Source of the DNA: Macrostomum lignano
Taxonomy: Eukaryota
Assembly (NCBI GenBank): GCA_002269645.1
Contig: NIVC01001567.1
Coordinates: 203,587-267,586, forward strand
Direction: 5' to 3'
Length of the DNA: 64,000 nt
Positions 4,793 through 64,000 of this stretch are shown piece after piece. A program made the translations under genes and the position numbers. Every line of letters starts with the position of its first letter. Positions within the stretch are counted from its first letter, which is position 1. The notes under the pieces were generated by a model. The model saw only the letters and a list, made by a program, of their open reading frames with translations, did not search any database and was not told where the DNA came from.

Positions 4793-6528
4793 CAGATCGT
4801 AAGAAATCAGTATTTACAAAGTAATAAAGCGCTTGGGCAGTATAAAGTATCCAGTGTGAGGATAGCACGGCTCACTGTCAGGCACAGGTGAGCTGTAATC
4901 TCATCAACCCTGCCGCCATCACCAGCTGTTTTACTGCTCATATATGCGCGGCTACAGCTACCTGTGCCAGCACCTGGACTACTCTGAGGATCCCTACGAA
5001 ATGCGCATTGCCAAGGCCCTGTGGTGGTACTACTTCTCCAAGTGTATCGAGTTCATGGACACTATTTTCTTTGTATTGCGCAAGAAGAACCATTTAATCA
5101 GCTTCCTGCACGTGTACCATCACGCCACTATGTTCCCGCTGTGGTGGATCGGAGTCAAGTGGGTGGCAGGCGGCCAGACCTTTGTAGGCGCCATGATCAA
5201 CTCTTTTGTGCACGTGGTTATGTACACCTACTACGGTCTGTGCGCTGTCGGCGAGTCCGTGCAGAAGTATCTGTGGTGGAAGCGGTACCTCACTAGGATG
5301 CAGCTAGTGCGTTTGCCTCTGTGTGGTGTGCTATCAGCCTCCCAGATCCCCAGTTGCTGGGCCAGCTTCCCAGAGTGTCAGTTGCTGGGCCAGCCTCCCA
5401 GATCCCCAGTTGCTGGGCCAGCTTCCCAGAGTGTCAGTTGCTGGACCAGCCTCCCAGACCCCCAGTTGCTGGGCCAGCCTCCCAGACCCCCAGTTACTGG
5501 GCCAGCCTCCTAAACCCCCAGTTGCTGGGCCAGCCTCCCAGACCCCCAGTTGCTGGGCCAGCCTCCCAAACCCCCAGTTGCTGGGCCAGCCTCCCAAACC
5601 CCCAGTTGCTGGGCCAGCCTCCCAGACCCCCAGTTGCTGGGCCAGCCTCCCAGACCCCCAGTTGCTGGGCCAGCCTCCCAGACCCCCAGTTGCTGGGCCA
5701 GCCTCCCAGACCCCCAGTTGCTGGGCCAGCCTCCCAAACCCCCAGTTGCTGGGCCAGCCTCCCAAACCCCCAGTTGCTGGGCCAGCCTCCCAAATCCAGT
5801 TGCTGGGCCAGCCTCCCAGATCCCCAGTTGCTGGGCCAGCCTCCCAAATCCAGTTGCTGGGCCAGCCTCCCAAATCCAGTTGCTGGGCCAGCCTCCCAAA
5901 CCCTCAGTTGCTGGGCCAGCCTCCCAAATCCAGTTGCTGGGCCAGCCTCCCAGACCCCCAGTTGCTGGGCCAGCTTCCCAAACCCCCAGTTTCTGGGCCA
6001 GCCTCCCAAACCCTCAGTTGCTGGGCCAGCCTCCCAAATCCAGTTGCTGGGCCAGCCTCCCAGATCCCCAGTTGCTGGGCCAGCCTCCCAAACCCTCCGT
6101 TGCTGGGCCAGCCTCTCAAATCCAGTTGCTGGGCCAGCCTCCCAAACCCTCCGTTGCTGGGCCAGCCTCTCAAATCCAGTTGCTGGGCCAGCCTCCCAAA
6201 CCCCCAGTTGCTGGGCCAGCCTCCCAGTCCCCAGTCAGCCCGCAGCAGTCGCAACGCATCCCTCCAACATCCCTCCCCACAGATCCAGTTCTTCATCGGC
6301 ATGGTGATGGGCAGCCACTCGCTGCTGACTGGCTGCGGCGCGGTGCCCATCTGGATGGAGTACGGGGCCATGTTCTACGGCATGTCCATGATTGTCCTGT
6401 TCGCCAACTTCTACTACCAAGAATACGTATCCAGGACCAACGCCAACAAGAAGAGGCCGGCCGTCAATGGCGCTAGCAACGGGTTCGCTGCGTCTCATCA
6501 CCATAGCAACGGGAAGAAAACAGATTAG
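3572..6528 (+). CDS. ELOVL4: Very-long-chain fatty acid elongase, ELOVL4-like (4 exons, ~295 aa)
   Basis: Exons 3572-3644, 4344-4531, 4926-5306, 6283-6528 join in frame (888 nt) with GT-AG introns. Protein [34 protein letters not shown]..., with KCIEFMDT, histidine box [21 protein letters not shown] and a C-terminal KKTD dilysine ER signal. Family is certain; the ELOVL4 subfamily call is by resemblance. Confidence 0.93.
3655..4245. repeat. 27-bp minisatellite in ELOVL intron 1
   Basis: Unit CCTTGTGTCCTTTGGTGTGCTGCCAGA, degenerate at both ends. Confidence 0.95.
5325..6230. repeat. 26-28-bp minisatellite in ELOVL intron 3
   Basis: Unit GTTGCTGGGCCAGCCTCCCAGACCCCCA; accounts for all the long ORFs at 5321-6528 on both strands. 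Confidence 0.96.
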
Positions 6529-8438: not shown

Positions 8439-11936
<3,498 letters not shown>

Positions 11937-12550: not shown

Positions 12551-12664
12551 ACTTGTGCCCTTTTTTCCCTCGTTCCCCGCCCCAACCCTTCCAGTCTGCC
12601 CCATCCCTCCATTTTTCTCAGTCAATAATCAATGCGTACGCTGATCACGCCACCTGGCACCTTG

Positions 12665-13310
12665 ACATCTACTCAGACATCTACTCAGACATCTACTCAG
12701 ATATCTACTCAGATATCTACTCAGACATCTACTCAGACATCTACTCAGATATCTACTCAAACATTTACTCAGACATCTACTCAGACATCTACTCAGACAT
12801 CTACTCAGACATTTACTCAAACATCTACTCAGATATCTACTCAGACATCTACTCAGATATTTACTCAGACATCTACTTAGACATCTACTCAAACATTTAC
12901 TCAAACATCTACTCAGATATCTACTCAGACATCTACTCAGATATTTACTCAGACATCTACTCAGACATCTACTCAAACATTTACTCAAACATCTACTCAG
13001 ATATCTACTCAGACATCTACTCAGATATTTACTCAGACATCTACTCAGACATCTACTCAAACATTTACTCAAACATCTACTCAGATATCTACTCAGACAT
13101 CTACTCAGATATTTACTCAGACATCTACTCAGACATCTACTCAAACATTTACTCAAACATCTACTCAGATATCTACTCAGACATCTACTCAGATATTAAC
13201 TCATACATCTACTCAGACATCTACTCAGACATCTACTCAGACATCTACTCAGATATTTACTCAGACATCTACTCAGACATCTACTCAGACATCTACTTAA
13301 ATATCTACTC
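12665..13310. repeat. 12-bp minisatellite with higher-order variants
   Basis: Unit CATCTACTCAGA, with recurring variants AACATTTACTCA and GATATTTACTCA. Confidence 0.95.
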
Positions 13311-14350
13311 AATTTTTGTTCACAAGCCCCAAATGAACGCTGGGCTGCTCTGCGCCAAGCCACATCGATGTCAAGGAAATTTGGCCAGAGAAATTCTGCC
13401 CTACTTCTGTTACCAAGTGTCACTTACAGCCGGTCTCAACGGGTCTCAGGCCATCTGCCGCTGCAAGCCTCCAAACACAAACACGCAGACGTTCGGATGT
13501 CGCATTTCCTGCCCAATTTCCTTTGTCAAACAGGCTTGAAAACTGGCCTGCCAAAAGCCGTGGGTGTTGCTTGAGAAACCGATCCAACGGCTGTTTTGAA
13601 ATTTCTTTCGTTTCCGACTGCGGGGCTTGTTGAAAGTGCAAAAGTTAAACGGCAAGATGCAAAAGCAGTATTAATATTAGATGTGAAAACTGAAATTCCA
13701 TCTGCTCAAGCGTGCTCAAGTCCTACCCACTCACTTCCTCTCTTTCTTTTGTCGTCTCCTGCCTCAAGCGTGCACCCTAAATTCCTTTTTTTAATTCCTT
13801 CATCCTTCCTCTTCAGCCTGGTGTGGGTTGAGGCGCTGCGAAAGAATGAGACAGTTATTGCCCCTCAGCCGCGGTGCTCAGGGTGTGGCGCGATGGCTGA
13901 GGGGATGACGTGGGGGAAAACTGATGCACTTGGCAACCCGCAGGCAAAAGTTTTGCTTTCAGACCTCAAGCCCTGCTCCCCTGTAAAAGTTCTTTCTTAA
14001 GTGCTTGGAGAGGCTTAAATTCCCAAATAGCAGAGTGTCCCAGCCTCCCTCAATATCCTGGGACCCCCCGGGCATTCAGTCTCTGAGCTGTTTACTGAGG
14101 CATTGAGATGGACCAGGAATGAATTTTAATTATTTATGGAGAGGCTTCAAGATCAAGCCGAGCAGTCTCGGGGCAGACTTGAGGCAGAGCTGCGGGGAGA
14201 CAGGTGGGTGGTCTGCGGCCCGCGTGCTTCCCTGAGACACTTTTGCTTTTATGTTGTACTTTCTGGCTAGCGACTCCGAGGCTCCTGGCTGGGACTCAAA
14301 CTTGATGAATCACTTTCTGCAGTTCAGTGAGCTGGCGATTGCTGGGTCAT

Positions 14351-14680
<330 letters not shown>

Positions 14681-14723
14681 AATCTGTCTAATTTATCTTA
14701 TCTAGTTAACTATTTCGTCTGTC

Positions 14724-16797
14724 TCCGAAACAAAGTCTCCGAAACAACGACAAAATTGTCACTAAGCCTGCAGATAAGGGCAGCAACATGGTCATCCTAA
14801 ACCTCGAAGACTACATCCGTGAAGTGAATAGACAACTTTCTAACACGACTTTTTACCAGCCTGTGGACTCAGCTTCAAGCACTCACACGGGTTCTCTGAT
14901 CAAGCAGATCTTTCAAGAACTGAAGGAGCAAAAGCTAATTACAAACCACCAATACTTCCAGCTTATTCCACCTCTTGAACCTCGCGATCGGATTTTCTAT
15001 TTGCTCCCAAAGATCCACAAGGATCCTAAATCATGGCCGATTCCCACAATCCCACCCGGACGGCCGATTGTCTCCGACTGCAACTCCGAAAGCTACATGA
15101 GCGCAAGGTTTATCGACCTCTTTCTACAACCGATTGCCAAGGAACAGGACTCTTTCATCCGCGACACCGATCACTTCCAAGCGGTCATTGACGGTTTGTA
15201 CTTTGCTAAGGAGGACAGTGTCCTCTTGGCTACAATGGACGTTGAGTCCCTTTACACAAACATCCCAACCGAGAGAGGTATGGATGCAGTGAGGGACGCT
15301 TTTCAAAAGTTCCCAGCGCCGACAAGGCCAGACCGACAGCTGCTTGACCTCTTAGACATTAACCTTAACCAGAATGATTTCGTCTTCAATAACAAGCGGT
15401 ATCTGCAGATCGAGGGCACTAGCATGGGGAAAGCCTTTGCACCCTCCTACGCCAACATCTTTATGGCGGACTGGGAGTCTAGAGCCCTGGAAACCGCACC
15501 TTTTGCTCCTCGACTGTATAAACGCTATATTGACGACGTCTTCATGGTCTTCGTTGGCGAGGAGTCGCAGCTGGAGGAGCTGCACAGACACCTGAATGGC
15601 TTCGATAGTAACATTCGGCTCACTTTGAACTACAGCCGTGAAAAAGTTCACTTTCTTGACTGCTACGTTTCTCTGACTGATGAAGGGGACATGAAAAGGC
15701 TGAATTGCTCAATCTATTCTAAGCCCACCGACTCTCGCCAACCCTTAGACCCGTCCTCATTCCATCCCAAACACACCTTCAAGGGGATCATGAAATCCCG
15801 ATTTCTCCGCTACGCACGTCGATGCACATTCAAGGCAGATTTTGATGAGGCTAGCAGCAGTCTGTTGGGCATCCTAAAGAGACAAGGACACTCAGTTCGG
15901 TTGATCCGAGACGCTAAGAAATCCGCCCTTACCCAGCTGGGGTTCTACACCGACTGGCAATGGGAGTTCGACTTTCAAGATTGCGGCATTCAAAGCTGCT
16001 ACTTATGCAAAGAACACAGCCAATGGGGCCAAGTCTGTCCAGGCTCAAAGTCTACGAAAATGATCTACAGAACCTGCCGGAAAGTCAGCTGTGACTCTCG
16101 AAACGCTGTCTATGCAATTCTTTGAAAAGCCTGCAGCGGCCACTGTGTCTACATAGGCGAGACGGGTGGAGCTCTAAAAGTTAGGCTCATGGCCCACCTG
16201 AGCGACATTAGACTCGCTAAAGACACCCGGTCTCAAGACATTTCTGCTCGTTTAACCACAACATTAAAGATCTCCGCTTCATGGGACTGTGGTAATCAAC
16301 TTGCTGAGCACTTGGACACCTGCTGGTCTCAACACAGCTGACAGTAGCAGAAGTGCTTGCATTCCGATTGTGATTCCATTCACGGACCACTCCGCCAATA
16401 TTGTACACAAAATACGCACAACCATCTCTGAGCATGCACGAGAGCTAAGCACGGTGGCTGCGTACACCAGGTCACGCTCTCTTAAGGACATTCTCTGTCC
16501 GTCCAAACTGCCTGCCCTAATCAATAACACAAATGAACCACCTTTCGGGTGAATAATTGTACATGCAGAGCTAGATCGCCAACGTGCCGGTTCGGCACCC
16601 TGCTCAACCAACTTATGCTTTTATACCTGCTCAAATTTACTAACTCTTCACTTTTCACTTTTTTAATTAGCTTTTTTTTGGATTTTTGTTGTTATTAAAT
16701 AAATAATTAAACCCTGAAGAAGGCCTAGCCTAGGCCGAAATATCGGTTCCAATAAACCTAGTCGAACTGTGTGCGTGGATTTTTCCTTTGCTTTCAT
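14724..16797 (+). mobile_element. Penelope-like retroelement (RT + C-terminal GIY-YIG endonuclease), 5'-truncated, endonuclease disrupted
   Basis: Frame open from LRNNDKIVTKPADKGSN through ORF 14788-16125: PPGRPIVS, DVESLYTNIP, GTSMGKAFAPSYANIFM, YKRYIDDVF, KPTD, HPKH. Then CxxxCxxC, VYAIL*KAC..VYIGETG..RLMAH, a frameshifted VSRHF..NH, and LSTWTPAGLN. The 3' UTR carries a hammerhead motif and AATAAA at 16751. Confidence 0.93.
16710..16748 (+). ncRNA. Minimal type I hammerhead ribozyme
   Basis: AACC (stem I), CTGAAGA core, extra A, GGCCTA-GCC-TAGGCC (stem II), GAAA, TA, TC cleavage site, GGTT (stem I'). Stem III is reduced to palindromic ATAT, as in the dimeric hammerheads of Penelope-like elements. 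Confidence 0.88.
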
Positions 16798-16854
16798 ATC
16801 TATCTATCTATCTATCTGTCTAATTATCTAATCTATTTAACTATTTCGTCTGTC

Positions 16855-17022
16855 CTACTGTCTGTCTCACTGTCTGTCTGTCTGTGTGTCTGTCTGTGTG
16901 TCTGTCTGTCTGTCTGTCTGTGTGTCTGTCTGTGTGTCTGTCTGTGTGTCTGTCTGTGTGTCTGTCTGTGTGTCTGTCTGTCTGTCTGTCTGTGTGTCTG
17001 TCTGTCTATGTGTCTGTCTGTG

Positions 17023-17074
<52 letters not shown>

Positions 17075-17160
17075 CCTGTCTGTCTGTCTGAATGTCTGTC
17101 TGTCTGTCTGTCTGTCCCTGTCTGTCTGTCTGACTGTCTGTCTGTCTGTCTGTCTGTCCC

Positions 17161-17200
<40 letters not shown>

Positions 17201-17226
17201 CCTGTCTGTCTGTCTGACTGTCTGTC
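16855..17226. repeat. (TGTC)n/(TGTCTGTG)n microsatellite
   Basis: Compound TCTG/TGTG run downstream of the Penelope-like element. Confidence 0.96.
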
Positions 17227-17590
17227 TTTAACCTGCCTGTTCGCTGATATCCAATCAGATCGCAGCAGCAGAGCAGTTCGCCCTGCAGTCTCACCTAACG
17301 CGTTCCTCCTCTATCACCATTGGCCCAGTTTGGAGCAGGCGTAGCTTGAGGTCGAGTCATGGAAAATACTATTTATGACAGCTTGCCAACGCGCGGGTCT
17401 TGACTGCTTCCAGTTTCTCTACTGACTTTTTAAAGATTTTCAAAGCTTCGAAAGCTTTTCTCGCAATGGTTCTGGTGGTTGAAGACTCCCGTTTGATGGT
17501 GGCCGCTAGCCGCTCTTTTCATCGGGTAAGAATTTTTTGCTATACAAACTGAGTTTGCTGTGTTGATAGAGTTGACACGCAGCCCGACAG

Positions 17591-19201: not shown

Positions 19202-49388
<30,187 letters not shown>

Positions 49389-50712: not shown

Positions 50713-52189
50713 CTACCGCACCACCACGCTACTCGCGGCCTCTCCAAATCTTCCATAAGCAGACGCTGACGCCGCCGCAACAGCCGCCGTCGCCGCGGCG
50801 ATTCTTTGTCGGTTTCGTCTAGCAAAAATGGCGCCAAGACCGCAGATCTGCAGCGCGGCGGCGCCCAAGCAGCATAGGGAGTAGGCGCGGAGTTCGGTGG
50901 ACAGCCAGGCGTGAATCTGGGCAGCGCAACCGACAGGAAACGGGCTGGCACAATCGGCAACTTTGCCTGCGCAGCAACTGGCAGGCGGCTGAGCTTCAAA
51001 GGCCAGCCAGTCTTTAGGCGAGTCGATTCCGCAGCAGCCAAGGGCCTGCTGGGTGAGATCGATCCACTGTTTGGCATCACCGGTCCCGTTAGAAGTGGAG
51101 TAGGCTCGCATCTCGGCCAGAAACTTCTGCCTGGCCTCCTTCTCCACCTGGGCCTGCATGACGAAGCCGGCTAGAAAGCCGGAGATCTCCATGCTGAGTA
51201 GCAGCAGGATAGCCAAGACGAGAATGAGAGTCTGGGAAGGCCAGTTGGGGTGAGGAGCGCGTTGTCTACATGTAGCAATCGAGATTCAAATTGCATACTT
51301 TTGTGCAATAACAAAATCCACATATTCAATATGCAAGAAAAAATTTGCAGAGTTTACTCGCATAACGCGTAGCTTTCATGAGCTAGGCGTTATGCGTTGT
51401 TGCTATAAAACTATGAAAAAATATCTTTGCGTACCCATAGTAAGTTGAAGACCCTCATAATTGACTGCAAGATACGGATGTCTTATTATATTATTAGAGT
51501 CTTAGTCCCAATGAGTTGAACTATTGTGACCATAATAATATTAATAACAACTGATTGCACCTGCTCCAATTGGGCCAGATGTGCAACCGACAACTCAGGC
51601 GCAGCTATTTGCGCGGCTCATCTGAAGCTGCGTACCGCTGTTAAGTCCAAGGATTGAGGAGTCGTCAAGCACCCTTAATTACCGCAGCTAATGCTGGCAC
51701 CCATTTTACAGCTGGTTGAGCTGAAGCAATGCAGAGTTAAGTGTCTTGCTCAAAGACACAAATTGTTTCAGTGGGATAGGGAATCGAAAATCCGACCTTT
51801 AAGTCGTGAGTCGACGCTTTAACCACAAGGCTACAACCTCATGTTGTAGCCTGTTGTAGCCTCAATTTCATGTTAGATTATAGCTGTGCAATTTATTTAA
51901 ATCCTGTCAAGTCACTTTATAAACATCGCTGCCAATGCTTGTGGGGGTCGAACATGAGCAAATGCCTCACCTGAAAGCCTCCAATTCGAACTCCGCTCTG
52001 ATGGTAGGCGCTGTCGGATGCCACCGCAGTGATGGCAATGGCAGCCGTTATGACAATCAAAAGTGACATAGGGAAGGTGCAGCCATATATGTCATACAGC
52101 TGGTCCTTCTGTCCCGTTAAGAAGAAGCCGCAAATGACCAGCAAAAAGCCGATGGCAAAACAGGCCACATTGTACAGAACGAGGTACAT
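50713..52189 (-). CDS. Tetraspanin (2 coding exons, ~245 aa)
   Basis: Exon 52189-51971 (two TM helices, donor CAG/GTGAGG) joins exon 51231-50713 (acceptor TTCCCAG) in phase 0. The large extracellular loop has CCG, PPASCC and GC (6 Cys), followed by a fourth TM. Confidence 0.85.
51552..51840 (-). mobile_element. tRNA-derived CORE-like SINE (copy 2, in tetraspanin intron)
   Basis: Collinear with 40263-40527; shares GCTAATGCTGGCAC..TTTTACAGCTGG..CTGAAGCAATGCAGAGTTAAGTGTCTTGCTCAA..GACACAAATTGT. Confidence 0.82.
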
Positions 52190-58899: not shown

Positions 58900-61800
58900 A
58901 CTTTACAAACCAACTATTTTTAAAATATACACAGGCGCAAGAGCCAATTTTTTAAAAACGGCTGACGCGCGGCCAGGGAGTTGTCGGCTTGGCACTCCCT
59001 CGGCATACTTAATAACTAAACAACTCGGAAAAAGCATTCGTTTTCCGTCCTTAAAGAAAAGGCAATAGTTGCCTTGGTAACTAATAAGCACTATAGTTTT
59101 AATACATCACAGGTATCCACAGTGTGGGCCTTCGGATGTGTCTTGCTATTCTGTGAATTAGCATCTGAGGTAGCTACTCACCTGGCGTCTGCATCGGCCT
59201 TCGGCGGCGACTTCAGCGGCATTGTCGGCGGCTTCGGCTTTTTCAGCGGTGACTGCAGCGGCTCCGGCTTCGTCAGCGACATCTCGGCGCCTGCAGCTTC
59301 GGCGGCTTCGACGGCTTGGTCCGGCGGCTCGGCGGTGCGACCCGGCTGGGCGGCGGCGGCAGCGGCGCGTCACGGCGGCGACAGCAGCGCGGCTCGTCGG
59401 AAGCGGCGGTGACAGGCACCTCGCGCGGCATCTGCAGCACGGCGCCAGACCAGCCCGGCTTATAGATATTAGAGCTTAGTTTTGATTTAGGACCTTCTCT
59501 TGTATTTTGTAGACAATCTACTACTATCAGTAGGATTATTAGTGTTTTAACATAGTTTTATTATTTATAAGTTTTAAAGTTTTATAAATTAGCCTACTGT
59601 TTTAAGGCTTTATTTTGTAAACACTTAGTACTAGCACAATCTGCAATGGAAGTAGAAGTCAATAGCAAAAGATGTGGTTCTAGAGACACTGACTCGCCGC
59701 CAGTCAGCACCAAGAAGCGCAACAACCGGTCCTCTTCCGGTCGAGACCAAAGGTCCTGTTCTGCGTCCTCCAGCAATGAGCCGTCTTGTGTGCAACAGCA
59801 GACAGTGACTGAAGAACCTCCCTCATGCGGTCAGCGATGGTGAGAGTCAGCCTGTCAAGAGTAGTAAACTAGCAGACTTAGGAAAAGCAACTAACATATT
59901 GACACTCAGTCTACCAGAACCTGACCTCACAGATGACAAAACTAGCCAGCCTTTAACTAACTGCAAAATCAGCAGCTCAAATCTTCTGAAGCCAAGCTAA
60001 TTAAAATTATAATGGAAGACATTTATCCAAACTCATACCACCATCTAACCAAGGGCAAGCCTGAGGCCAGGAGAATAGTCTGGTATGGGCCTGAGTACAC
60101 CTATGGGGGTACTAAGATTGAGTGCAACGACGCTTGGCACCCAGTCGTCACTCACTTAGCCACTTGGCTTCACGTCGAGCTTAGAGTGCCACTAGCTAAT
60201 TCGTGCCTGATCAAATTTTATAAAGATGGATCGGTAGCCATCCATGGCACTCTGACAACGAACCAGAGTTAGGCCACGACCCGACCATTGTGTCGGTGTC
60301 GCTGGGAGCCCAGAGAGACTTCCAGCTTCGAACTAAAGGGCCAGATTTAGAATATAGTCTACTCGCAGAGGCTTGCCAGTGGTAGCATCACGATAATGAG
60401 TGGGGCTAGCAACTCAGCAATCAACCAATCGCACTCAGCAGCCAAGCACACACACTCAGCAGCCACAAGCACGCACTCAGCAGCCAAGCTCACAACAATC
60501 TAATAATTCTAAATTAACTAAAATTACGCCAGTTGTATTTGAGATGCCCGTTGAGGCTAAGAATCCTATTAAATTCGAATATTTCTTAAAAACAAACTTT
60601 CCTAACACTCGCATCGTGTCATCATCGTGTCATAGCTCAGGACACTACGTAATTTACTAATTCTCCACACGATATGAACAACTTATTGACAACAACACTA
60701 AAAGTTAACGAAATTAATGGGCACACTGTCACTAGGCGCCTGCCGTCAAATAGGCCACTGCACCAAGGCGATGATCGGCTGCGTAAGCCCCTTAAATCGC
60801 CGCAGGTCCGCGCCTTCATCGTCAAAGGTGTTCCTCTAGCCGTGGAAGCCGAGGAACTGCTGCAATATTTAGATGAAAATCAGGCACATTTTTAATTCGA
60901 CAGTGCGGTACGCATTGTCTCGAAGGCCTCAGGCCAACCGACACCTCTCATCAGGATGTTTACAAAGTCAAGGGCAACTTACGACACCTGCCTGGAGAAC
61001 GGCATTAAGCTTGGGGCATTGAAACTCGGGTGCGAAGAATCGCACAATCTTCCACGGTCAAGGAAGTTCAGTGCCACAGGTGTCAAGGCCTTGGACGCAC
61101 CGAAAGCAGGTGCAACGCCGGTTTTGTTTGCAACAAGTGTGCCGGGGCGCACTATTCCGGCGACTGCCCAAAAGATACGGCTTTAAGTGCGCTAATTGTG
61201 GGGGTGAACACCCGGCGTTCTCCTTCAAATGCCCAAAAGGTTCAGCATGCAAATGAGAGCGGCGACTGAAAGAGAGCATCATAGAGTTCAAACTTTAAGA
61301 CTTAAATTCAAACAGACTAGAAAATTAGAACCTACTCAAAATCTAGCTGAGACATTTGGCGTACCTGGCCCTGTCTCGTACGCGGAGGCTGTCAATCAGG
61401 TGCCAGTACTAGGACCAATCGCGTTCGAGAACAGAGCTTCCAAAGCGTTCAAGGCTGCTGCTGCTGCCGCTGCTGCCGCCCAGCCAGCAGCGCCGTCTAC
61501 TGCTGCTGCTGCTGCCGCCCAACCAGCAATGTCGTCTGCTGCTGCTGCTGCCGCCGCTGCCGCCCATTCAGCAGTGCCGTCTGAGACTAAAGCTCCTGTG
61601 ACCAAGAAGCCTGCAATGACACCAATCAATGCCGATCCAAATAACACTGACAATGCCGCCACTTCTTCTGCTGGAAACGGTGAGAGGGCTTTACTCAGGT
61701 GACGTGCTCGAGGTGGTTCTCGGGGCACTCAACCGATCATAGAGATCGAACCGGGGCGTCTGCTCACTGCCTGGGAAGCAAGCCAGCTTGCTATTCGGGT

Positions 61801-64000
61801 AGTGACGGAAGTCCTGGCGACTTTCCTGAATCACGGAAGAGTGCCCGCTGTCAGGGCAGGGGAAACCAAAGCCACTTCGGTGAGCGGAGGCGGATCCAGC
61901 CCTGAATAATCACTGACTTACTATGGCTTTCTATAATAAATCTTCCAAAAGTGCACTAAACATAGGACACCTTAACTGCAACAAATTAAGCAACAAAATG
62001 CACGAAATTATTATGTGGTTGCACAATGACGATATTGACATTGGTCTTTGCTGCGGGCTGGCTTCTGCCCGAGCAGATTGAGCTTTAATTTGTAATTGCC
62101 ATAGACAAGTTTATTTGCCTGTACTGCGATTAGTTGGCGCAAGTGTCAAAGAGCCTTCGTGACAAAAAATAGAAATACATAAGTATTCAAGAAGACTGAT
62201 AAGAGCAACGGCTGCAAGAGCCGAGAGTGCACGGCACACAACTTGCGTAAATATAACGCAATACAAAAGACAGACTTGTAACAGTATTTTCTCTGAAACC
62301 GATCTTAAAAATATTGATACTTTTTATGTACAAGGTTATGCCATCATCAGGTATGACACTCCTGACTGCAGAAGGGACTGGCAATTGCCTACAAGAATAA
62401 CTTTAAAATTTGAAATGTCAATAAATATTATGACAATTCCAATTATGAGCTTATCAGCCTTGATGTCACTCCAACAACAATCCCTGTAGTACTCTTAGGA
62501 TTTCTGTTATCTACAGAGCTCCCAATCCTGACCATATCAGCACTGCACTGCTTGAGCAGCTGCTCTCCCAACCCAGATCCTTACTATTAGGGGATCTCAA
62601 CTGTCACTCTATGCTAGGTGGGGACAGTGTAGAAAACTTCCCAGGCAAACAGCTATTCGATTGGCTCGATAATCACCCTGATCCCCCCTCTATCCTCAAC
62701 TCCTTTGGTGACTGCACCAGGATTTATAATAGAGGGGGCAACATTATCGGGAATGTTCTTGATCTAGGTATTTGTTCCCCTGATCTAGTCAACTCTGTTA
62801 GTGATGTTTTAGGGGCGATGACCTTGATAGTGATCACCTACCCATTATGATTAAAGTCTTCCTCGACCCCTGCTCCAAGGTTAAACCAAAGCCATCCAAG
62901 AGTTTTTGGCACACTGACTGGGAAGCTTTTAAGTATGCACTCCAGATAATTTAGAAAACTGCAGCATGATTCGTTCCCGAATCTTCACTCCCGATGATCT
63001 TGACAACGTGTTGATAAGCTCACGGAAAAAATCCATGAAACAATAGAGTAGGTGGTCCCAGATAGGGATCCGAGAGAACAGCTTCTCCAGACATTGTAGA
63101 AAAGATTAGGAACAGAAGAAAGCTTCAAAAACTTTTCAAAAAACCAGAATTGACGCTTTTAGAGTACAGGCAAACCAAGCCGCTAAAGAAATAAGAATTG
63201 CTATAAGAATGCATAGGTACAGAAAATTTGAGAATGTATGCCAGAAAATTGCTAAAACTAGCTACAGAAAAGAACCCTGTCAATTCTGGATCGACATAAA
63301 GAAAATGACCGGACAATATATTAAACCAGTCTCATTTCCCGCCCTTAGCTACAAAGGGGTGACTGCCGAAACTGAGCAAGAAACTGCAAACTTATTTCAA
63401 GATTTCCTCAAGGACCAAATGCAGCCTCATCCCGACACCAAGTCCCTTATCTAAAAGGAGGTTATTTCTAAGGAAAATCATGAGATCTTCCGGCCCTACG
63501 ACTGCATGGCCAGAGCCCTGACCTATCACCGGGACAGAACTGACCTGATGACCCTGGTAGGGAAGCCATGGAATCTGACATCTTAACATTCTGGATATAG
63601 ACGTCCTCATGGAAACAAAAAATCTTAGATCTGGGGGAGCCCCTGGCCCTGATCAGATCCCAAACATTGTCCTCAAACGAGGGCTTAGTCCGCGACTCTG
63701 TTAGAACTATTGCAAAAATTTTCAACACAAGCTTTTTCTGGGCTTTTTCCCAAGGCCTGGAAGCGGGCGACTATCAAAATGATACCAAAGCCAAAGAAGT
63801 TTAGGCATGAAATAAACAATTACTGCCTATCAGCCTAACCTCCTGCCTGGGAAAACTTTACGAAAAAATAATTGCCAGAAATCTTAGAAAAACAAGGCAT
63901 TATTAATGAAGACCAATGTGCGTACAGACAAGATCATTGTACGTTTGACAACATTGGTGCGACTCACAGACGATATACTAAAATGAATTTATGGAGACAT
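58900..64000 (+). mobile_element. Decayed non-LTR retrotransposon (Jockey/I group): 5' UTR, ORF1 (AlkB-like + CCHC gag), ORF2 (APE + start of RT)
   Basis: ORF1 remnants span 59646-61702: MEVEVNSK.., AlkB motifs, FIVKGVP (RRM-like), three knuckles CHRCQGLGRTESRC / CNKCAGAHYSGDC / CANCGGEHPAFSFKC, and SYAEAV. ORF2 starts at ~61960: GHLNCNKLSNK, SETDL, GYAIIRYD, GDLNCH, VLDLGICS, then LPISLTSCLGKLYEKII and EDQCAYR. Many frameshifts and stops; the 5' boundary is approximate and the element runs off the window. Confidence 0.9.
60060..60425 (+). pseudogene. AlkB/ALKBH2-3-like 2OG-Fe(II) dioxygenase domain within LINE ORF1 (frameshifted, C-terminally truncated)
   Basis: RRIVWYGPEYTYGG..WHPVV..ANSCLIKFYKDGSVAI / WHSDNEPELGHDPTIVSVSLGAQRDFQLR / SGSITIMSG / ATQQ. 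The HxD motif lies at 60248-60256. Confidence 0.85.

Follow-up and report, generated by a model that had tools for sequence, protein, structure and literature searches.

A decayed LINE copy in Macrostomum lignano points to an AlkB-type dioxygenase as an integral ORF1 domain in a group of retrotransposons

Does a retrotransposon carry its own nucleic-acid demethylase, and if so, what would it do with one? The question is raised by a decayed long interspersed nuclear element (LINE) of Macrostomum lignano that lies at the end of a stretch of 64,000 nucleotides (contig NIVC01001567.1, positions 203,587 to 267,586; hereafter the window). The original prediction, read from the letters of this stretch, placed an AlkB-type domain resembling ALKBH2 and ALKBH3 in the first open reading frame (ORF1) of the element, ahead of a gag region with RNA recognition motifs (RRMs) and CCHC zinc knuckles. 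We put the probability that AlkB is an integral, selected domain of ORF1 in this LINE group at about 95%, on the evidence of the window copy, of its intact relatives and of the pattern of conservation among them.

An AlkB remnant in the window and its intact counterparts

By its sequence, the region 59646-64000 is best read as a decayed copy of a retrotransposon that lacks long terminal repeats (non-LTR), of the apurinic/apyrimidinic endonuclease (APE) type, with two ORFs on the forward strand, to which all coordinates of the element refer; both ORFs contain many stops and frameshifts, and the 3' part is cut off by the end of the window. The AlkB remnant occupies 59976-60418 and is spread over three frames. 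Stitched into one peptide, it matches the Pfam profile 2OG-FeII_Oxy_2 (PF13532), the one suggested with the original prediction, at E=4.9e-18 and 66.5 bits, the gathering cut-off being 31.2 bits. Against the PDB, human ALKBH3 comes first (E~2e-16) and ALKBH2 second (1e-6). These Pfam and PDB matches are far beyond chance, and tblastn with the M. lignano proteins P0003 and P0004 and alignments identify the same domain. Direct reading and the translations recover every motif of the predicted series: RRIVWYGPEYTYGG at 60069-60110; NSCLIKFYKDGSVAI, which contains NSCLIKFYKDG, at 60198-60242; PWHSDNEPELG with its HxD, after a frameshift, at 60242-60274 (HSD at 60245-60253); IVSVSLGAQRDF at 60287-60322; and SQRLASGSITIMSGA at 60363-60407, which reads GSITIMSGA with TQ next, past another frameshift.

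That this copy is dead had also been predicted, and each of the lesions named is there. Three frameshifts interrupt the remnant (near 60243, near 60350 and near 60410). The Asn of the NxY motif, which binds 2-oxoglutarate (2OG), has become Lys, giving KFY where relatives read NSCLINFY. HxD is still present, and the C-terminal third of the domain, with the distal His and the RxNLTFR strand, is gone. The HxD...H iron triad is therefore incomplete here (HSD only), as are the 2OG-binding residues (KFY, with RxNLTFR deleted); the full triad is found in relatives with a complete AlkB domain, and both NxY and RxNLTFR are kept in P0001, P0003, P0005-P0008, P0152 and P0154. In place of the missing part, directly after GATQ, stands a TQQP microrepeat of 21 bp x 3.6 at 60412-60487 (Tandem Repeats Finder). 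Alignment to the linkers of P0001 and P0002 suggests that this repeat is the remnant of a Q-rich disordered linker and, at the same time, the junction of an internal deletion, which relative to M. lignano P0001 removes ~180 aligned residues, beginning at GATQ and ending inside the Q-rich linker. The window copy is dead because of this deletion, which took the distal His and RxNLTFR with it, together with the Asn>Lys change, the frameshifts and the stops. We accordingly class it as a pseudogene, and the family itself as one that qualifies as AlkB.

A word-indexed search with the stitched AlkB and gag peptide returned three proteins, two named M. lignano and the third, P0002, a MetaClust accession. 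P0001 (696 aa) has a complete AlkB domain (…SGATQSHLQHAV…RVNLTFR), a Q-rich linker, a gag part, a CCHC knuckle and a C-terminal tail like that of the window copy, and P0002 begins at the last AlkB strand (RINLTFR) and goes on into the whole gag, its three knuckles included. The AlkB domain is complete in P0003 and P0004, and P0004 also shares the N-terminus of the window copy from SRDTDSPP onward. The whole window ORF1 is collinear with these four proteins, which belong to what we call M. lignano family A. To find the DNA context of the family, P0001, P0002 and P0003 were looked up as exact sequences, and there was no record of them.

Relatives beyond family A came from searching 1.84 billion representatives exhaustively with HMMER, P0001 being the query. 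It yielded the full-length fusions P0005-P0008 (757, 962, 892 and 843 aa) and a second M. lignano family (P0010, P0048, P0153-P0155), with at least five gene models on several scaffolds; relatives score 78-109 bits against PF13532. On raw contigs, AlkB, RRM and CCHC run together as single uninterrupted ORFs of 843 aa (L001), 892 aa (L004), 757 aa (L011) and 962 aa (L010). What lies downstream identifies the elements as LINEs. In L001 (9 kb), ORF1 is followed by a 948-aa ORF2 with Exo_endo_phos, Exo_endo_phos_2 (PF14529) and RVT_1, that is, APE and reverse transcriptase (RT) without RNase H in the 948 aa, which together with PF14529 gives no more than an indirect hint of the Jockey superfamily or group. 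An APE ORF begins right past the ORF1 stop in L010 and L011, and the L004 contig ends just beyond ORF1, its last ~240 bp being 82% identical to the start of the L001 ORF2. On the M. lignano scaffold NIVC01003829.1 (L009), an AlkB-gag ORF1 is followed by APE and then RT, while ahead of it stands the last part of the RT of another copy, a tandem partial one; BLASTN found no DNA similarity between L009 and the window. An ORF2 with APE and then RT is thus seen as APE in the window and, with a complete RVT_1, in L001 and L009. The copies are multiple and dispersed, and include decayed ones, as the gene models on different scaffolds, the tandem partial copy in L009 and the window copy attest. A search for ORF2 homologues gave 14 matches, none informatively named for LINE clade, and in two of them (L007, L008) the upstream sequence is too short to reveal ORF1.

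The original prediction was exposed on two sides: the AlkB segment might have been confined to this copy as a captured host fragment, or the distal His and Arg might have been missing from every copy. The segment is present in M. lignano relatives and in other families, and intact copies keep both HxD...H and RxNLTFR. Pfam, PDB and the collinear relatives together uphold an ALKBH2/3-like domain upstream of RRM and CCHC in a LINE ORF1.

Conservation tells how the domain has been treated since. In alignments, no relative whose AlkB domain is complete lacks HxD, the distal His, RxNLTFR or NxY, at a whole-ORF1 identity among these relatives of only 26-49%. AlkB is the best-conserved segment of ORF1, with 39-51% identity between deep lineages, where the RRM core reaches 30-39% and the linker 13-21%. 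The nonsynonymous divergence (dN) between L001 and L004 falls in the same order, with 0.24 for AlkB, 0.39 for the RRM core and 0.68 for the linker; synonymous sites are saturated in this pair, so that only the ranking of dN is usable and omega is not quotable. Both rankings point to strong constraint on AlkB, an old and selectively maintained part of ORF1 across related LINE families.

To see how the parts fit together, we turned to an AlphaFold2 model of the 843-aa ORF1 protein P0008, built from a 7-sequence alignment; it is a relative that was modelled, not the broken window copy. The predicted protein has a jelly-roll domain, the double-stranded beta-helix fold, at residues ~75-262 (predicted local distance difference test, pLDDT, 75-90), a disordered linker at 265-380 and two beta-alpha-beta-beta-alpha-beta domains at 385-453 and 487-561, after which come the knuckle region, a long helix, a disordered stretch and a C-terminal three-helix bundle (781-842, pLDDT ~85). 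Foldseek against the PDB placed human ALKBH3 first for the AlkB part (E 5e-19, template modelling score to target ~0.8), including complexes with single-stranded DNA (ssDNA) and 3-methylcytosine (3mC). The best 25 matches are all ALKBH3 or ALKBH2, and ALKBH6, E. coli AlkB and ALKBH5 rank lower at 1e-9 to 1e-11 (ALKBH5 at ~6e-9). A separate model of the gag part matched the tandem-RRM proteins U2AF65, Pub1, hnRNP A1/UP1 and HuR at E ~3e-7 to 1e-5. The fold of P0008 and the knuckles of the window put the RRMs directly upstream of CCHC, the arrangement of a Type I ORF1 protein (ORF1p). In the sense of PMC4120745, then, the ORF1 protein is predicted to be a Type I ORF1p with an AlkB enzyme on its N-terminal side.

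Origin of the module

Which AlkB is it? In a PDB search with the intact P0003, ALKBH3 scored 92.8 bits (E 2e-25) and ALKBH2 72.9 bits, and no other paralogue reached E<0.01. The ALKBH3-type assignment therefore holds by sequence as well as by the fold of the P0008 model. The element domains resemble human and metazoan ALKBH3 (PDB 2iuw, 8jnk, 8jnr) as their best match in both respects, sharing HxD...H, NxY, RxNLTFR and a ~190-residue jelly roll. They differ in forming a clade of their own, in reading LxH instead of WQH, in their shorter loops and in being fused to an RRM/CCHC gag in a retrotransposon ORF1, whereas ALKBH3 is a free-standing host enzyme. The signatures of the element clade also include W-x-G-P without the 'EL' insertion. 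ALKBH3 is thus the best paralogue, yet the element domains do not fall within the metazoan ALKBH3 clade, and we would call them ALKBH3-like, not ALKBH3 orthologues.

An AlkB phylogeny had been called for with the original prediction. All 17 retroelement-linked sequences fall in one clade of a 159-domain AlkB tree (SH-like approximate likelihood ratio test, SH-aLRT, 99), and in a 60-sequence tree this clade has an ultrafast bootstrap (UFBoot)/SH-aLRT support of 99/99. Within the smaller tree, the window copy groups with M. lignano family A (100/98), and a separate metazoan ALKBH3 clade (96/95) unites emu, vole, the nemertean Tubulanus, the crinoid Antedon and spiders. The ALKBH3-like protein that is M. 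lignano's own, P0064 (PAA75878.1), is inside this metazoan clade. When the window family was forced to group with P0064, the tree was 34 log-likelihood units worse, and the approximately unbiased (AU) test rejected it (p-AU 0.0076). Other close neighbours of the retroelement clade are bacterial and algal AlkB-family proteins. Because the retroelement domains form one clade and grouping with the host P0064 is rejected, the capture is old and was probably single.

One protein that joins AlkB to a C-terminal part resembling an L1-type RRM (P0087) was not counted, as its AlkB is outside the element clade and its C-terminal part is without Pfam or PDB support.

A different kind of element also came into view. 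In L003:1805-7083 (Logan SRR19193851), a 1012-aa ORF contains an AlkB of the same retroelement clade (P0009/P0152), and 108 bp further downstream a 710-aa ORF combines RT with a C-terminal GIY-YIG nuclease, a Penelope-like layout. This is a single contig, on which RT and GIY-YIG have weak Pfam matches (E ~3e-3). A Penelope-like element may also house the AlkB module in its upstream ORF; modules would then have been exchanged between retroelement classes. The window itself contains at 14788-16125 (forward strand) an intact 445-aa ORF (RVT_1, E=4e-8) whose RT motifs (PKIHK, GRPIVS, LATMDV.SLYT, YIDD) resemble those of L003 by eye; there is no adjoining AlkB in the window.

The remainder of the element and of the window

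The N-terminal region of ORF1 (59646-59975) starts with the ATG at 59646 and contains a stop at 59841-59843 and a frameshift; it is collinear with P0004 from SRDTDSPP (59679) into AlkB (BLASTP over the whole stretch, E=4e-72). Past the microrepeat, two RRM-like domains lie at 60502-61060. A Pfam search gave no match in this region, and the domains are recognised by collinearity with P0001 and P0002 and by the fold of P0008. They are marked by frameshifts and two in-frame stops. Within the first of them, 11 bp are perfectly duplicated in tandem (CATCGTGTCAT x2, 60612-60633), which is one of the frameshifting lesions behind the death of the copy. The CCHC region (61072-61232, read directly in two frames) contains three knuckles, CHRCQGLGRTESRC, CNKCAGAHYSGDC and CANCGGEHPAFSFKC, of the pattern CX2CX3-4HX4-6C, except that the first (61072-61113) is altered from His to Arg. 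They align with the knuckles of P0002 and P0005-P0008; P0007 has a zf-CCHC Pfam match, and there are weak nucleocapsid matches. The C-terminal tail (61233-61909; tblastn, alignment) consists of a helix, repeats rich in Ala (61454-61583) and, at the C-terminus, a helical domain that is conserved (DVLEVVLGAL...VVTEVLATFLNHG). ORF1 had been drawn from 59646 to 61702. The start stands and the end does not: since tblastn homology to P0001 and P0004 reaches 61891, through a stop and a frameshift, and the terminal stop is at 61907-61909, ORF1 is ~200 bp longer.

ORF2 (61923-64000) is heavily decayed and leaves the window at its end, with APE, a linker and the start of RT inside it. Its APE matches Exo_endo_phos_2 (PF14529) at E=5.5e-8, and the whole matches residues 43-592 of the intact 948-aa L001 ORF2 (tblastn E=1.6e-58). 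Of the APE and RT predicted downstream, the former is there, and the latter is represented by its first ~60 residues, the rest lying beyond the window. A ~240-bp insertion (62049-62288), which may be a small secondary insertion, splits the APE between DIDIGL and FSETDL, contiguous in the intact L001. The spacer between ORF1 and ORF2 is 13 nt in the window and more than 400 nt in L001, and in L010 (3587-3588) and L011 (3110-3112) ORF2 starts 1-2 nt past the end of ORF1; such tight junctions suggest termination-reinitiation coupling in some families. Self-BLAST and tblastn found no second copy of the element within the 64-kb window.

Upstream of ORF1, 59180-59645 could tentatively be a 5' untranslated region (UTR), made up of a GC-rich stretch with 30-bp tandem repeats (59211-59300) and then an AT-rich spacer. 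We considered whether the GC-rich part (59180-59460) is conserved as such; its only match, weak and of low complexity (E=0.33), lies in the translated upstream part of P0003 from M. lignano, and the assignment is kept tentative.

Elsewhere in the window, at 4944-6528 (forward strand), a fatty-acid elongase exon (Pfam ELO family, E=1e-41) gives way to a minisatellite of ~1 kb, rich in proline, past which the frame picks up again with an elongase-like C-terminal sequence, so there seems to be a tandem array in or beside a host elongase gene. Dense, long micro- and minisatellite arrays fill ~10.7-33 kb (for example 10700-11000, 12600-13500, 14330-14780, 16830-17340, 20900-22200, 22520-23230, 24480-26480, 30240-31110 and 32270-32990) and produce spurious ORFs of hundreds of codons, which fits a very repeat-rich genome. 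A cyclic-nucleotide-binding-domain exon at 44696-45289 (forward strand), with a weak Pfam match below the cut-off, resembles by eye part of a channel gene, and a fragment of a tetraspanin host gene lies at 50713-51216 on the reverse strand (Pfam E=1e-18).

Possible function and significance

What would an enzyme of this kind do for a LINE? ALKBH3 removes N1-methyladenine (m1A) and N3-methylcytosine (m3C) from single-stranded DNA and RNA, two lesions that prevent Watson-Crick pairing and bring reverse transcriptases to a halt. In an active element, ORF1p would use its RRM/CCHC part to bind its own transcript in cis, and the flexible linker would tether the demethylase at high local concentration on the element RNA, from where it could also reach the ssDNA exposed in target-primed reverse transcription. 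Oxidative removal of m1A and m3C from the template or ssDNA would keep the template copyable and give more full-length cDNA. Such template repair in cis is the most likely function on the present evidence, at what we take to be even odds. The original prediction, that the element may package a demethylase in its ribonucleoprotein (RNP) and with it repair its RNA or cDNA or clear them of methyl marks, seems reasonable in that it fits the strong constraint on the domain, and the ALKBH3-like subfamily argues for repair of m1A and m3C over erasure of N6-methyladenine (m6A). The fuller history, in which a single ALKBH3-derived module entered an animal retroelement long ago, came under purifying selection, diversified with the LINE families and maybe passed into the Penelope-like L003, all in the service of self-carried m1A/m3C template repair, falls a little short of even odds.

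Several points weigh against this account. The window copy cannot be active. The family A gene models have either a complete AlkB (P0003, P0004) or a complete gag (P0002), so that the continuous AlkB-bearing ORF1 expected of genomic copies is seen in four other families and not, on DNA, in family A. The known breadth is narrow: M. lignano, the one SRA project (SRR316283xx-4xx) from which P0005-P0008 all come, and one further run. The node joining the retroelement and metazoan ALKBH3 clades is weak (68/82), and the tree, while compatible with a donor that would be ALKBH3-like, does not fix its exact lineage. The retroelement clade also departs from host ALKBH3 in that the loop ahead of the last strands is ~9 residues shorter and the N-terminal hairpin is shorter too, in addition to LxH for WQH, and its specificity may have shifted relative to the host enzyme. 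Finally, we infer both the substrate and the action in cis from homology and architecture only.

Other roles can be envisaged for a conserved AlkB domain. The enzyme might erase m6A or another mark from the LINE transcript and so evade reader-mediated decay or silencing, an epitranscriptomic counter-defence that we regard as unlikely. It has been proposed for some plant viruses and for an orchid Ty3/Gypsy element whose AlkB is an m6A demethylase in vitro (PMC9289625), m6A and ALKBH5 modulate human L1 (PMC7873242), and the conserved catalytic residues would fit any demethylase activity. However, the domain is ALKBH3/ALKBH2-like by sequence and fold, with ALKBH5 distant (E~6e-9 vs 5e-19) and no ALKBH9/10- or FTO-type relatives among the best matches, and human L1 retrotransposition is reported to be suppressed, not helped, by the eraser (PMC7873242).

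A slightly less likely possibility is that the enzyme works mainly on the DNA side, on the single-stranded target or cDNA at integration, where it might for instance remove the 3mC that DNA methyltransferases make as a by-product in a DNMT-positive host. The preference of ALKBH3 is for single-stranded nucleic acid, ssDNA among it, and the top folds are ALKBH3-ssDNA/3mC complexes; M. lignano is reported to retain DNMT1/DNMT3 and ALKB2 (PMC9246332). Against this, fusion to an RNA-packaging protein puts the enzyme on RNA first, and the present data do not separate RNA from ssDNA substrates. More doubtful is a non-catalytic role, the AlkB fold serving only to bind nucleic acid or a host factor, for example as a decoy for ALKBH3 partners. 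Other accessory domains of ORF1, PHD and esterase, are of unproven activity (PMC4120745), and the lineage-specific loop changes in the retroelement clade could be taken in this sense, but binding alone would not require that HxD...H and the 2OG-binding Asn/Tyr and Arg be kept in all complete-AlkB lineages at 26-49% identity. Least probable by far is a one-off event, a host ALKBH3 fragment or retrocopy that landed by a 5'-truncated LINE or was template-switched onto it: the single copy in the window, with its mRNA-like 5' part, LINE-like 3' part and AlkB without a 3' end, has the look of a template-switch chimera, but comparison with relatives shows that the AlkB end was lost through an internal deletion, the window AlkB groups with element-borne AlkBs and not with the host-gene clade, and the domain is no local accident because the same order of N-terminus, AlkB, linker, gag and tail recurs in proteins of M. 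lignano and in no fewer than five other families, so that on these comparisons we consider the event already refuted.

Template repair by an ORF1-borne AlkB would have partial precedents. ALKBH8 is a host fusion of RRM and AlkB with a methyltransferase domain that modifies tRNA; it marks RRM joined to AlkB as workable RNA targeting, and its structure 3tht is among the fold matches of P0008, although it is a host enzyme and not a LINE component. TET/JBP dioxygenases are linked to Kyakuja-Dileera-Zisupton DNA transposons in fungi, another case of a 2OG dioxygenase travelling with transposons, but there the element is not a LINE and the substrate is 5-methylcytosine in DNA. Type I LINE ORF1p, in the classes of Khazina and Weichenrieder, combines RRM and CCHC (PMC4120745); the proteins described here have the same RRMs immediately upstream of CCHC and APE+RT ORF2 downstream, and differ by a ~190-aa enzyme and a 100-200-aa linker ahead of the RRMs. 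A survey of 448 Jockey-superfamily elements lists RRM, CCHC, coiled coil, C-terminal domain (CTD), PHD, esterase and zf/lz among ORF1 domains, and the word AlkB is absent from it (PMC4120745). The AlkB domains of plant RNA viruses (Flexiviridae and others) repair m1A/m3C in RNA (PMC2553587; mapped in PMC544882). They share with our elements an RNA-based replicon with its own AlkB and the logic of template protection, but they are part of a replicase polyprotein and of a different AlkB lineage (PMC2553587, PMC544882), whereas here the domain is in the packaging protein of an animal retrotransposon. Closest in kind are the Ty3/Gypsy elements of the orchid Phalaenopsis, with a 2-oxoglutarate-dependent dioxygenase (2-ODD)/AlkB ORF that is an active RNA demethylase in vitro (PMC9289625). 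An AlkB-family demethylase is fixed in a retrotransposon in both cases; the orchid one is a recently acquired, separate extra ORF of a plant LTR element and of the plant m6A-demethylase type (PMC9289625), whereas ours is fused into ORF1 of an animal non-LTR element, ALKBH3-type and old (families at 26-49% ORF1 identity). In the full-text literature, which leaves Repbase Reports and subscription journals outside its coverage, we found no report of AlkB in a LINE ORF1, only the plant viruses and the one plant LTR element. Modular LINE ORF1s are known, then, and so is AlkB on mobile RNA replicons; the combination is not, as far as we have found.

A practical consequence concerns annotation. P0001, P0003, P0004, P0010 and P0153-P0155 are labelled 'Fe2OG dioxygenase domain-containing protein' in UniProt/NCBI though they are LINE-borne. 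Mislabelled LINE AlkBs could inflate ALKBH counts in surveys of methylation and repair, for example that of ALKB2 retention in M. lignano (PMC9246332); the host's own ALKBH3-like gene appears to be P0064 (PAA75878.1).

With a conserved dioxygenase that repairs nucleic acid, the LINE RNP would gain a new enzymatic activity. If template repair is what it does, then m1A and m3C on template RNA or ssDNA would limit retrotransposition in vivo, whether they come from damage or from host methyltransferases, and methylation damage or deliberate host methylation would be a real barrier that these elements have overcome. Intact natural copies exist, which makes the idea directly testable. The AlkB theme of plant RNA viruses and one plant LTR element would thereby extend to non-LTR elements of animals, suggesting that RNA-templated replicons are under convergent pressure.

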